Origin: Macrostomum lignano | Lineage: Eukaryota | NCBI GenBank assembly: GCA_002269645.1 | Contig: NIVC01000102.1 | Location: forward strand, 267,950 to 331,949 | DNA: 64,000 bases | Direction: 5' to 3' | Shown here: one piece after another, positions 16,935 to 55,577 of the stretch | Position numbering within the stretch: position 1 is the first letter of the stretch | Layout of the letters: every line of letters begins with the position of its first letter | The notes under the pieces: generated by a model | Database searches by the model: none | The model's input: only the letters and a program-made list of their open reading frames with translations | Told to the model about the DNA's origin: nothing | Made by a program: the position numbers and the translations under genes

Positions 16935-19900
16935 ATGAAACAAAATCGAAGTCGCCATGAGACTGTCACTACCGACAACATCACGCCAACTGCTCTACGC
17001 GCTGCGACCCACGGGCACTTTAGCGACATCACCCGGATCATTTTTGAAGCTCGATTCATTAGTTGCTTTGAAGACTTCAAGTATCTCACCCCGCAAATCA
17101 ATAACCAATCAAACTTGCTGCAAAATGCTGCATTTTCTGGTCGCTTTAAAGACGTCAAGTTTCTCCTCTCACAAATCAATGACCAATCAAACAGGGACAC
17201 CTGCTGCATCAAAGCCGCCGAAAATGCAGCATTTACTGGTCGCTTTGAAGACGTCGAGTTTCTCCTCTCACAAATCAATGACCAATCAAACAGAGATACC
17301 TGCTGCATCAATGCTGCCGAAAAAGCTGCAGACAATAGTGACTTTGTTATCCTCGAGTTTCCCGTCCCACAATTCACTGACCAATCAAAGAGGGGCACCT
17401 GCTGCATCAAAGCTGCTTTAAATGCTGCATGCAATCGTCAGTTTGAATTCATCAAGTTTCTTCACTCCCAAATCAATGACCAATCAAACAGGGACACCTG
17501 CTGCATCAAAGCTGCCGAATCTGCTGCACGCAATGGTCGCTTTGAATTCGTCAAGTACCTCGTTCCACAAATCAATGACCAATCAAACAGGGACGCCTGC
17601 TGCATCAAAGCTGCCGAAGATGCTGCAGGCAATGGTCACTTTGAAATCGTCGAGTATGTCGTGCAACAAATCAATCGCCAATCAAACAGGGACACCTGCT
17701 GCATCAAAGCTGCCGAAAATGCTGCAGGCAATGGTCACTTTGAAATCGTCGAGTATGTCGTGCAACAAATCAATCGCCAATCAAACAGGGACACCTGCTG
17801 CATCAAAGCTGCCGAAAATGCTGCAGGCAATGGTCACTTTGAAATCGTCGAGTATGTCGTGCAACAAATCAATCGCCAATCAAACAGGGACACCTGCTGC
17901 ATCAAAGCTGCCGAAAATGCTGCAGGCAATGGTCACTTTGAAATCGTCAAGTATCTCGTTCCACAAATTAATGACCAATCAAACAGGGACGCCTGCTGCA
18001 TCAAAGCTGCCGAAAATGCTGCAGGCAATGGTCACTTTAAAATCGTCAAGTATCTCGTTCCACAAATTAATGACCAATCAAACAGGGACGCCTGCTGCAT
18101 CAAAGCTGCCGAAAATGCTGCATGCGATGATCACTTTGAAATCGTCGAGTTCCTAATCGCGTGTCTACCAAGTCCAAATCTAAAAGCGAATCTCCGTTTC
18201 CAATGCGCACTCAGCGGTTGCTATCAGGGCCACGACAAGGTTTTTGCCTCCGTCGGCCTCGAGCCCCAATGGCTCTTTCAATCCAGCACCATCCTCAGCT
18301 TCACTGCAGCAATGGCAATTGAAGGCAAGAACTGCGTTCTCAACAAAACCCTCTCTCAAACGCACTCAGCTCAAATCACACACCTGCTCCGCCTCTCTAT
18401 CTCTCAAAGACACGTCGCTCTTGCCGTCACACTGCTCAATCATCAGCGATTCAGCACACAGAATGTCGATCGCCCAGACGACAACACCGGAGCCACCGCT
18501 CTCATGCTCGCAGCTGATGCAGGTCATCACGAACTCATTCACAAACTCATCGATCTCGGCGCCTCACTGCACGCTCAAGACACTGACGGTCGCACTGCTC
18601 TGTCACGAGCCTGCCAAGCCGGTCACGTGCGAGCAGCCAAGACTCTCATCGACAATGGGGCCGATGCCAGCCATCGAGACAGTCAGGGCCTCACGTGTGC
18701 GCAGCTTGCACAGCGATTTGAGCAGCGGCAGGTGCTGCGGCTGCTAAATCCCACCGAGTCAGTTGGAATTTTTCCCTCTACTTGCAATCACCTTGCTACC
18801 TAACCTCGCTTTCATTCACATATTCCAGAAACACACAGCGCCCCCAGACAGCCGCTCACCGCCTTCATCCGTAAGTCTGACCGCCATCCCGCAAATCCGC
18901 TTCCACTGACTGCACCTGCACTATCACCACTCGAGCTTTTCCCTCATGCATCCTTCCAGACTCTCAAACGAGGAGCTGCATCGACTGCTCAGCGATGCGG
19001 GATTCACCGAGCAGAGAGCAAAGTGTCAGCAGAGACTGGCGGACTGGCTACAAGGAGTCGCTCGAGTCCTCACTAAAGATGGCTATCGCAGGCAGATGAC
19101 GGGCAGCTACGCAGAGGGCTGGGCCAACAGTCTGGTGCAAGTGAATGGCAGGACAGCTGCAGACTCGGACATTGACTGGACTGTGCTGGTTGCTGGGCAA
19201 AGGTTCCATCTGGAAGGTGGCTGCAATGGACGATTTGGTTCCTGCAAAGACGCCACTCCGCTGCAGGTCAAGGAGGGCCACGCACAAGTGGCAGTGGGAG
19301 CAGGTCAGTGACGCTCGGTTCATCATCAAAATGCCAAAATTCCTGCTCCGTTTTTATTCGATACCATCAAACAAAAATATCGCTTTTAATACAAATTCCG
19401 GCAAACAATCAGGCGTTATGAAAGAATTAATAAGCAATTCCTTGCGCATACATCATAAGCATGCCTACAATATGCAATACATTAAAAATTGATCTGAAAG
19501 AAAATGAAACAAATTTTCTTTCTCTGCCGAGCATCAACTCCATACAGTAGTAGCATACATTCATTTATGTATCCATAACTCCATATATTCCTTGATTAAA
19601 GCAGTAGCGACACGCGAGAAGAACAAGCGCTACTAACACATTCAAGCAATTACAAACCAACCAATTATAGATATTTATCACCTGCCACAAAGCAACTCCA
19701 TGCTCACTGCGCTCTGCAGGCAGCCAACCTGCAGTGACAGCCACGGCGTGCGGTGTGCGGCCGGCACAGGACACGTGCCATGCAATCCGGTGCTGCAGCA
19801 GCTTCTGTGAGCACAGAATTAAAAAACTGACTGATCTACTACTTCCAAGCGATGGTTTTGCTCACCTCGTTCGGGCGACCAGGCCCAGCTCGACCAACGA

Positions 19901-21332
19901 GCTCAGAGTGAGCTTCAGTTTCCAAGAAAAAGACATCATGAGACGGCTAAGCACAGTCCAGGGCCAGCTGTTCACACTCATCAAGTTCATCTTCAAGAGA
20001 CACTTGCCGCTCACTCTGGACACACCTGGACTCAAGACCTACCATGCAAAGACTCTGCTCTTCACAATGCTGGAGAAGCATGGCACAGATCCTTCAAGTG
20101 AGGCTTGGCAGCCCCACAATCTGATCGCTCTGCTCAACGAGTCTCTCGACATGATGCTGAGCGTCATCGACTCGAGCAGCTCGCCCGATGAGTGCATGCC
20201 GCACTTCTTCATGCCCGACGCTCCGCTCTACTTCAAGAACGCTGGAATCGGCGGCGACTTCGACAACACGAAGGCGAGGGTTCGAGACCGACTTTGTGAG
20301 CTGAGAAGCGACATCGGCGGAGTGGTCGAGCAGCTGATGAGACTCGTGAGACCTCTGCAGTCAGAGAAGTTTTACTTTCACCCGTTCACTCTGTTGCCTC
20401 TAACAGCCCCGCTTGCTGTCACGGAGATCAGGGAAGGAAAAGGCCGTACAAAAATTTACTACAAGTTCGCAGACGTGTACAGTGTGGTGCAACAGTGTGT
20501 GAGCGAGCTGCAGTCGGTATCGAGCGACAGAGACACCCTGATGAGGCAGCTCAGTCTCCTGCATGAGCTGCAGTGGTGCAAGTGCGCCGCCCTGTGCATG
20601 ACCGCCATGGCGCATTTGAAGTTCTGAGAATCTGAGGAGGCTGAGAGACTTGCGATGGAGCTGCAGAGACATCAGGTTGAGTCAGGGTTGAAGCCTCAGG
20701 ATATTCAAGAAAAGCGTAACTGGGAAACAAGAAAGATAAAACTGCCAGCGGACTCAGACTGGGCGTGGAGGTTCTGCCTCCCCTGCGACTCTCCGCCTCG
20801 CTTCCCATTCCTTCCCGAGTTCACGCAGACTCTGTTCACAGCCAGACTGTCGCAGCCTCTCCCCTCCCACCTGTACGTGAGCTTCCGCTGCCTGAGCTGG
20901 AGTCTCCAAGCTGAGCTGCTCCGCAATCGCGCACCTGCAATCGCATTCGATCATTGGATTGAACAGCTGCTTGGAGACCCGGACTTGGAGGAGCTGCTCA
21001 CTCTGGCTCACTACAGCGACTGCCGCGAGCACGTAGAGCTCAGCCTGCAGCAGATGGAGATGATCGAGAAAGAGAGACGCGTCGCCATGGAGACGCAGGA
21101 CGAGGAGAAGATCGGCTGGGTCAGGCAGAAGCGGTGGCGAGTTTCGAACCGCAGCGGCAGCGACAGCGGCGCTCGCCGCAGCAGGGAAGATGAAGAGCGG
21201 AGGCTGTGGGCGAGGGCGAGGCTGCGGCGAGACGGCGGGGCCGACTTGGGGCGTCTGGTTTCCATGGAAACAGCAGCGGAGCAGAGAGACAGCTCGACTC
21301 ACGCCAAGCTCAGTCGGATGAGACTGCAGTGA
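16935..21332 (+). CDS. Ankyrin-repeat / Mab-21 (cGAS-like, cGLR) nucleotidyltransferase, copy 1; exons 16935-18757, 18829-18870, 18960-19303, 19720-21332; premature TGA at 20625-20627
   Basis: GT-AG introns (phases 2,2,1) join in frame. Ten 33-aa CC repeats plus canonical ANKs; GSYAEG..DSDID, QDTCHAI, ELRVSFSFQEK, LKTYHAKTLLF, CMPHFF are Mab-21 motifs. TGA stands where the paralogs have GGA (1038 aa truncated, 1273 codons if read through). Confidence 0.85.
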
Positions 21333-54300: not shown

Positions 54301-55577
54301 CTCTGCTCTTCACAATGCTGGAGAAGCATGGCACAGATCCTGAAACTGAGGCTTGGAAGCCCCACAATCTGATCGCTCTGCTCAACGAGTCTCTCGACTT
54401 GATGCTGAGCTTCATCGACTCGAGCAGCTCGCCCGATGAATGCATGCCGCACTTCTTCATGCCCGACGCTCCGCTCTACTTCAAGAACGCTGGAATCGGC
54501 GGCGACTTCGACAACACGAAGGCGAGGGTTCGAGACCGACTTTGTGAGCTGAGAAGCGACATCGGCGGAGTGGTCGAGCAGCTGAGGAGACTCGTGAGGC
54601 CTCTGCGGTCAGAGAAGTTCTACTTTCACCCGTTCACTCTGCTGCCTCTGACAGCGCCGCCTGCTGTCACGGAGATCAGGAAAGGACGTGGCTCTCAACA
54701 ATTGTACTGCAAGTTCGCAGACGTGTACAGTTTGGTGCACCAGTGTGTGAGCGAGCTGCAGTCGGAATCGAGCGACAGAGACACCCTGATGAGGCAGCTC
54801 AGTCTCCTGCATGAGCTTCAGTGGTGCAAGTGCGCCGCCCTGTGCATGACCGCCATGGCGCATTTGAAGTTTGGAGAATCTGAGGAGGCTGAGAGACTCG
54901 CGATGGAGCTTCAGAGACATCAGGCTGAGTCAGGGTTGAGGCCACAGGATATTCGAGACGAGAGTAGCGACTGGAGTATATTGATAAAATTGCAAACAGA
55001 TTCAGACTGGGCGTGGAGGTTCTGCCTCCCTTGCGACTCTCCGCCTCGCTTCCCATTCCTTCCCGAGTTCACGCAGACTCTGTTCACAACCAGACTGTCG
55101 CAGCCTCTCTCCTCCCACCTGTACGTGAACTTCCGCTGCCTGAGCTGGAGTCTCCAAGCTGAGCTGCTCCGCAATCGCGCACCTGCAATCGCATTCGATC
55201 ATTGGATTGAACAGCTGCTTGGAGACCCGGACTTGGAGGAGCTGCTCACTCTGGCTCACTACAGCAACTGCCGCGAGCACATGGAGCTCAGCCTGCAGCA
55301 GATGGAGATGATCAAGAAAGAGAGACGCGTCGCCATTGAGACGCAGGACGAGGAGAAGATCGGCTGGGTCAGGCAGAAGCGGTGGCGAGTTTCGAACCGC
55401 AGCGGCAGCGACAGCGGCGCTCACCGCAGCAGGGAAGATGAGGAGCGGAGGCTGTGGGCGAGGGCGAGGCTGCGGCGAGACGCGGCCGACTTGGGGCGCC
55501 TTGTTGCCATGGAAACAGCAGCGGAGCAGAGAGAGAGCTTGACTCACGCCAAGCTCAGTCGGATGAGACTGCAGTGA
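51360..55577 (+). CDS. Ankyrin-repeat / Mab-21 (cGLR) nucleotidyltransferase, copy 3; exons 51360-52609, 52684-52725, 52821-53200, 53857-55577; ~1130 aa (alternative ATG at 51342)
   Basis: Same exon phases and splice sites as copies 1 and 2; open frame; GSYAEG..DSDID; five 33-aa repeats; in-frame poly-Asp tract. Confidence 0.88.

Follow-up and report, generated by a model that had tools for sequence, protein, structure and literature searches.

Do the ankyrin-repeat and nucleotidyltransferase open reading frames that follow one another along contig NIVC01000102.1 of Macrostomum lignano belong to three spliced genes, and are these genes active members of the cGAS-like receptor (cGLR) family? 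The question concerns a eukaryotic, repeat-rich stretch of 64,000 nt of this contig (the window), in which three units with identical layout, here called U1, U2 and U3, lie on the + strand between 14.6 and 55.6 kb. The cGLRs now count among the major families of innate immune sensors in animals, M. lignano is a transgenic-ready flatworm model, and the usual account of flatworms is that they lost cGAS and STING. I consider it likely that the units are three tandem, same-strand paralogues of a Macrostomum-specific ankyrin-cGLR family, whose products work as ligand-triggered enzymes that make nucleotide second messengers.

In each unit an ankyrin exon, a micro-exon of 42 nt (U1 and U3) or 54 nt (U2) and two nucleotidyltransferase exons join in frame. 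I joined them at the sites given for U2 in an earlier annotation made from the letters alone (the original prediction) and at the homologous sites of U1 and U3. The coding exons are 16935-18757, 18829-18870, 18960-19303 and 19720-21332 in U1, 41435-42897, 44501-44554, 45006-45385 and 45622-47078 in U2, and 51360-52609, 52684-52725, 52821-53200 and 53857-55577 in U3, and the joined reading frames measure 1273 codons with one internal stop (U1), 1117 codons (U2) and 1130 codons (U3, counted from 51360). The exon lengths give intron phases of 2, 2 and 1 in every unit, all donor sites read GTGAGT, GTCAGT or GTAAGT, and the acceptors all end in CAG, the majority of them preceded by a pyrimidine-rich tract; the ankyrin exon of U1, for instance, ends at the donor GA/GTCAGT, and its micro-exon stands between the acceptor TTCCAG and the donor GTAAGT. 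As 42 and 54 nt are both multiples of three, skipping of the micro-exon would preserve the reading frame.

The four-exon structure originally proposed turns out to be incomplete, as each unit has a further exon upstream, which ends at a GTGAGT donor after position 14800, 39483 or 50418. All three of these segments close with ...GGCGAT(C/T)G followed by GTGAGTCC, the junction in U1 being GGCGATTG/GTGAGTCC. With approximate starts, the exons occupy 14653-14800, 39353-39483 and 50256-50418; the homologous segments themselves extend over 39353-39635 and 50256-50503, and a comparison of the window with itself places the copy upstream of U1 near 14.65-14.94 kb. The acceptor before the ankyrin exon is found 4 nt ahead of the ATG in U1 and U3 and 27 nt ahead of it in U2, and the ankyrin exons span 16931-18757, 41408-42897 and 51356-52609 in full. 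With the shared upstream donor and acceptors just ahead of the ATG, each gene has a non-coding first exon. In U3 the acceptor CTCTCCAG ends at 51355, which makes the ATG at 51342, the start implied before, intronic; judged from the sequence, the start codon is most likely the ATG at 51360.

The splicing pattern is found again in a separate public gene model. PAA85498.1 (P0019, BOX15_Mlig009595g1) is 99.6% identical to U2 over the ankyrin exon (its residues 1-488). In the first enzyme exon and in the initial 197 residues of the second, at which point the model stops, the identity is 96-98%. Its aligned blocks (41435-42898, 45004-45387 and 45618-46208) coincide with the splice sites of U2, and it contains the U2 micro-exon peptide SPGARQAAAHLLDSGLH, the segment SPEARQAAAHLLDSGLH being its residues 489-505. 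By these identities PAA85498.1 is essentially U2 itself. On the contig that carries it, NIVC01000323.1 (GCA_002269645.1), the surroundings of U2 are collinear with those in the window; as the contig is only about 97% identical across U2, it is a different haplotype, subgenome or line. For U1 and U3 no counterpart above about 88% was present among the proteins found. The micro-exon peptide of U1, NTQRPQTAAHRLH, is homologous to NPQHLQAAAQRLH of the annotated paralogue PAA68676.1 (P0007, BOX15_Mlig016402g1), which is 83% identical to U2. Because a separate public model has the exon boundaries of U2, the joined structure is not due to chance, and at the level of sequence the gene structure of all three units, with the phases 2, 2, 1 that had been claimed for them, is confirmed as real.

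It might be argued that the ankyrin and nucleotidyltransferase frames are separate genes, and that their fusion is an artefact of compatible splice sites; the first enzyme frame of U1 does begin with an ATG. This is scarcely conceivable, as phases and consensus sites agree between three units that have diverged from one another, both Ank and Mab-21_C are present in dozens of independent public models drawn from two sources of annotation, and neither U2 nor U3 offers a suitably placed start codon within its enzyme exons. Moreover, the paralogue model P0008, the N-terminus of which resembles a translated 5' untranslated region and matches 39359-39484 and 50294-50398, joins the ankyrin exon straight to the enzyme exon with the micro-exon skipped.

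How large is the family to which these genes belong? When the enzyme half of U2 served as query in a protein search, 38 clusters were retrieved, most of which have both Ank and Mab-21_C; all are labelled M. lignano except one, an unnamed metagenome protein from JGI. Clustered at 50% identity, the family as a whole falls into 143 groups, of which 99 have E below 1e-10, and every one of ten distant representatives looked up came from M. lignano. As predicted, the family is expanded, and greatly so; on these database matches it is also specific to Macrostomum.

Some members of the family have a different architecture. In the M. lignano models P0043, P0176 and P0044 the cGLR-like part comes first, ankyrin repeats follow, and a caspase domain (Peptidase_C14, E = 1e-25 to 1e-27) closes the protein. 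On NIVC01002235.1, positions 6001-9651, one uninterrupted frame of 666 codons covers the C-terminal half of the cGLR-like part and the ankyrin repeats, and the caspase exon follows about 290 nt further. In the two caspase-linked models that were aligned, the catalytic aspartates are degenerate (DMN and ES in P0043, DIN and QT in P0044).

The products of the three units open with ankyrin-like repeats of 33 residues that are nearly identical to one another; a helical linker, canonical ankyrin repeats, the nucleotidyltransferase and the C-terminal domain come after them. The Pfam ankyrin matches are strong (Ank_2 at 3.2e-41 and Ank at 6.7e-26). The N-terminal repeats are exactly 33 residues long, and their number differs between the units in line with the variable repeats originally noted, U1 having 10 clear copies, U2 having 7 and U3 having 5; the ankyrin exon of U1 has degenerate N-terminal copies in addition to the clear ones, before the linker and the canonical repeats. 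At the DNA level they are 99-bp tandem repeats (in U1 17138-18150, 10.2 copies, 88% match), and as these match each other by up to 88%, recent expansion and contraction of the array is indicated.

Is the second half of these proteins a cGAS-like enzyme? All three products contain TGSYAEGWANSLVQVNGRTAADSDIDW, PAQDTCHAI, RVSFSF, LKTYHAKT and MPHFF, and the set listed in the original prediction (GSYAEG..DSDID, QDTCHAI, RVSFS, KTYHAKT and PHFF) is present in every unit. The segment TGS...DSDID is located at 19099-19179 in U1, 45166-45246 in U2 and 52987-53067 in U3, all within the first nucleotidyltransferase exon, and the QDT segment with the third Asp lies in the second, at 19761-19787 in U1 and 45663-45689 in U2. 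Li et al. 2023 (PMC9980059) define cGLRs by h[QT]GS X8-20 [DE]h[DE]h X50-90 h[DE]h, and the active-site motif of the units reads MTGS-X20-DIDW-X62-QDT. The activation-loop motif is present as M-T-G-S in U1, U2 and U3, D-I-D-W follows 20 residues after the GS, at the upper limit of the range of 8-20, and the third acidic residue, an Asp, comes after a further 62 residues, standing between Q and T where the definition has hydrophobic residues. The looser published pattern [E/D]h[E/D] X50-90 [E/D] fits the units. Among 21 paralogues, down to 30% identity, G55, S56, D77 and D79 are invariant and D144 is nearly so.

Profile and fold comparisons lead to the same family. The Pfam model Mab-21_C (PF20266) matches all three units, with 24.6 bits for U2, 28.1 for U1 and 25.6 for U3, all of them marginal against the gathering cut-off of 24.1. 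A profile of 18 diverse family cores, compared with the PDB, finds cGAS at E = 1.1e-7 and 'cGAS-like receptor 1' (8gjy) at 1.5e-5, and no other family below E = 0.3; a single sequence reaches cGAS at E = 0.3 only, and the family profile is needed for significance. The AlphaFold2 model of the enzyme part of U2 with the C-terminus has a mean predicted local distance difference test (pLDDT) of 79.9 and a predicted template modelling score (pTM) of 0.84. In a Foldseek search of the PDB with this model the top 50 matches are all cGAS or MAB21L1, the best with E = 2.8e-6 and probability 1.0; the alignments span about 200-400 columns, and those of the best cGAS matches about 380. Membership in OAS or in the bacterial CD-NTases was considered too and rejected, as neither occurs in the profile results or in the first 50 fold matches.

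In an hhalign alignment with human cGAS, for which the reference sequence is identical to PDB chain 5v8o_A, the Asp of QDT falls on D319, RVSFS on RLSFS and YHAKT on YHVKT, in agreement with the original proposal that the Asp of QDTCHAI is probably the third catalytic one. This alignment is limited to the last two thirds of the enzyme, and because the N-terminal third was missed, the equivalence of the GS and DxD residues with those of cGAS follows from the reading of the motifs and the whole-domain Foldseek match. By the model, the enzyme part has a cGAS-like fold with an intact set of catalytic motifs.

Several observations weigh against the view that these genes encode working, ligand-triggered enzymes. 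The third Asp stands in the context Q-D-T and not h-D-h, its neighbours Q and T not being hydrophobic. The Pfam model of the catalytic half (PF03281) has no match in the units at E <= 1, and the N-lobe is recognisable by fold and motif only; of the expected Mab-21 models the C-terminal one is found and the catalytic one is not. The TM-score to cGAS is only about 0.5 (0.49-0.55, target-normalised). The isoelectric point of the enzyme core is near neutral (7.3-8.5, and 5.1 in U3), unlike that of the basic, nucleic-acid-binding cGAS, and with such a core a basic nucleic-acid platform as in cGAS is not suggested. Catalytic residues are lost in the paralogues P0043, P0044, P0045 and P0117, from which it follows that catalysis would be dispensable for part of the family, and no enzymatic activity is known for any member. 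The 15 characterised active cGLRs come from insects, anemones, molluscs, hydras and corals, and none from a flatworm (PMC9980059); a loss of cGAS and STING is reported for Schistosoma (PMC4117786), and in Schmidtea neither was found (PMC13563047). Finally, U1 carries an in-frame stop codon, overlooked in the original prediction: at 20625-20627 it has TGA in place of the GGA (Gly) of U2 and U3, as seen in both the DNA alignment and the translation.

The main alternative is that the proteins are catalytically silent scaffolds of the Mab-21 type, like MAB21L1 or MiD49/51, in which the ankyrin and C-terminal domains serve for assembly and the fold at most binds a nucleotide ligand. MAB21L1 is indeed among the fold matches, the neutral core and the absence of flatworm enzymes from the characterised active cGLRs agree with such a role, as does the reported absence of STING from other flatworms, and some of the paralogues that have lost catalytic residues are fused to caspase domains, which points to use as non-enzymatic sensors. 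However, the GS loop and the three aspartates are kept in all units and in most paralogues, which would be unexpected for a non-enzyme, and Mab21L1-type proteins have no active site according to Li et al. (PMC9980059). Given how well most of the family conserves its catalytic residues, I regard a purely structural role as unlikely, though it deserves to be kept in mind.

The stop codon in U1 raises another question, namely whether the array is still maintained or consists of young pseudogenes that decay, free of selection, in a satellite-filled, repeat-rich region. The product of U1 stops after residue 1038, short of most of the C-terminal domain, the second nucleotidyltransferase exon (19720-21332) being broken by the stop. 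U3 has an in-frame insert of 31 residues of poly-Asp, derived from the microsatellite at 53985-54077 in its last exon (53857-55577), inside the enzyme domain. Furthermore, dN/dS, the ratio of non-synonymous to synonymous divergence, reaches 0.78 in the C-terminal domain, and large satellites and retroelements flank the genes. Against decay, the frames of U2 and U3 are uninterrupted, with splice sites and motifs intact, dN/dS (0.3-0.8) is below 1 in every segment and unit pair, and the poly-Asp insert maps to a low-confidence surface loop of the model. The frame of U1 stays open for 235 codons past the stop, and the lesion is accordingly recent and isolated. A decaying array is very improbable in my view; on its sequence U1 is a recently truncated copy, possibly a young pseudogene.

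The divergence between the units is unevenly distributed. DNA identity is 91-95% in the last exon and 72-83% in the ankyrin exon, and synonymous divergence, at 0.16-0.33 for the ankyrin part, drops to about 0.10-0.12 for the C-terminal domain. Together with the dN/dS values, this pattern would fit purifying selection, not strong, combined with homogenisation at the 3' end or faster turnover at the 5' end. The genes are predicted to end in two types of tail, KLKRLDAAAGVLKFESHY in U2 and RWRVSNRS...MRLQ in U1 and U3, each followed by a stop codon. A fragment of the U1/U3-type tail is located upstream of U1 (11678-12028, + strand; it encodes EERRLWARARLRRDG..DLGRLV.META.EQRDS), and a degenerate end of the U2 type, KVGLVREMLERLDAAA with its stop codon, about 1.2 kb downstream of U3 (56795-56842, + strand). 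With two tail types and stray tail fragments flanking the array, the junctions of the tandem duplications appear to run inside the 3' end of the last exon. The three-gene arrangement, the nonsense codon of U1 and the poly-Asp insert of U3 are specific to the window.

The C-terminal domain itself is more than the helical C-terminus originally described. The last 270 or so residues (in U2 approximately 46269-47024, with equivalents in U1 and U3) form a domain that is highly conserved in the family and folds confidently when modelled alone (pLDDT 84.7, pTM 0.85). Comparison with the PDB and with viral structures (BFVD) gave nothing significant, the best matches, at E = 0.33 and 0.22, being generic helices like those of tetratricopeptide repeats (TPR), and because of this I assign no function to the domain. 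The C-terminal domain is lineage-specific.

How, then, would an intact unit such as U2 work? By analogy with other cGLRs, the enzyme would be inactive until a ligand or partner binds; once activated, it would make a nucleotide second messenger, and this in turn would switch on a downstream immune effector. The ankyrin array would most plausibly serve as a recognition or docking module, because its copy number and sequence, surface positions included, vary between paralogues and the enzyme surface is non-basic, but I hold this more loosely than the activation of the enzyme. A bolder version is that Macrostomum kept and massively expanded its cGLRs for a STING-independent circuit, in which what the ankyrin array senses is a protein or some ligand other than a nucleic acid, and the output passes through the C-terminal domain or the caspase-linked paralogues (from cGLR to caspase), and not through a cyclic-dinucleotide receptor of a known kind. 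I find this version distinctly improbable as it stands.

The surroundings of the units are rich in repeats. Between U1 and U2 lies a 13.1-kb satellite (25806-38921) with a 23-bp unit, GAAACTCGTGCTCAGATTCCAGT, in about 570 copies at 97% match, and a 21-copy version of the same satellite is located between U2 and U3 (49372-49856); one 41-bp minisatellite precedes both (24769-25463 and 48827-49029). In NIVC01000323.1 the long 23-bp array measures only about 2 kb. The second intron of U2 contains 5.8 copies of a 50-bp unit that match each other at 100% (44662-44951). Mini- and microsatellites are numerous elsewhere in the window too, among them 15-bp units at 12963-13662 and 22677-23356 and an (AGAT)n run at 50519-50965. 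Upstream of the array, a single open reading frame of 1342 codons (6292-10320, + strand) starts with ankyrin repeats (Pfam Ank_2 5.8e-24); its C-terminal part is hydrophobic and looks, by eye, like a multi-pass channel of the TRP type, and Pfam finds no channel family in it. Further upstream (209-3869, - strand), two overlapping frames encode the pol part of a long-terminal-repeat retrotransposon, with protease, reverse transcriptase, RNase H and integrase. No Rfam family and no tRNA turned up when the window was scanned for them.

The original prediction held the family to be possibly undescribed in this lineage, and this does not stand. GenBank and UniProt already contain spliced models of the family. 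Li et al. (PMC9980059) identified more than 3,000 cGLRs, some with ankyrin or TPR modules, and state that 'most platyhelminthes' are without cGLRs apart from Mab21-like proteins; in the accessible part of their tables, Table S2 gives Ank_2 domains for M. lignano accessions, and Table S3 includes five M. lignano proteins purified for a biochemical screen. Two of these five, #92 (PAA93208.1) and #93 (PAA68676.1), come from exactly this subfamily, and the purified M. lignano constructs were without the ankyrin part. Macrostomum does not appear in the part of Table S5 that was available, and neither the caspase fusions nor the accession of U2 are found in the accessible tables, where absence is uninformative. 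A literature search returned no paper on STING in Macrostomum, no sequence-database search for STING having been made, and no later paper on the function of ankyrin-cGLRs.

U1 to U3 are further copies of a family catalogued and partly screened in 2023, and the window adds no concept beyond that catalogue. It supplies clean, full-length gene models with the 5' exon, the micro-exon and an intact reference copy, U2, from a species that has more than 100 divergent ankyrin-cGLR clusters in a phylum usually described as devoid of cGAS and STING.

Among the closest known proteins are the M. lignano paralogues PAA68676.1 and PAA93208.1, which are 76-88% identical to the units over the enzyme and C-terminal domain and share their motifs and the architecture of ankyrin repeats, cGLR and C-terminal domain. 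With vertebrate cGAS (PDB 4k9b, 5v8o) the units share the bilobed nucleotidyltransferase/Mab-21 fold, the GS activation loop, the acidic triad including the third Asp aligned with D319, and the RLSFS and YHxKT motifs. The identity is nevertheless about 14%, no zinc-ribbon insertion is evident in the units, the spacer between GS and DxD measures 20 residues as opposed to 11 in human cGAS, and the large N-terminal ankyrin array, the 270-residue C-terminal domain and the near-neutral core set the units apart. In the coral Stylophora pistillata, too, cGLRs are fused to ankyrin repeats, a combination that Li et al. 2023 (PMC9980059) report as a recurrent minority design; the coral belongs to another phylum, however, and has STING receptors and active cGLRs, neither of which is known for the flatworm family. 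MAB21L1 (PDB 5eog/5eom), finally, has the same fold as the units and is among their Foldseek matches, but while it has no predicted functional active site according to Li et al. (PMC9980059), the units keep theirs.

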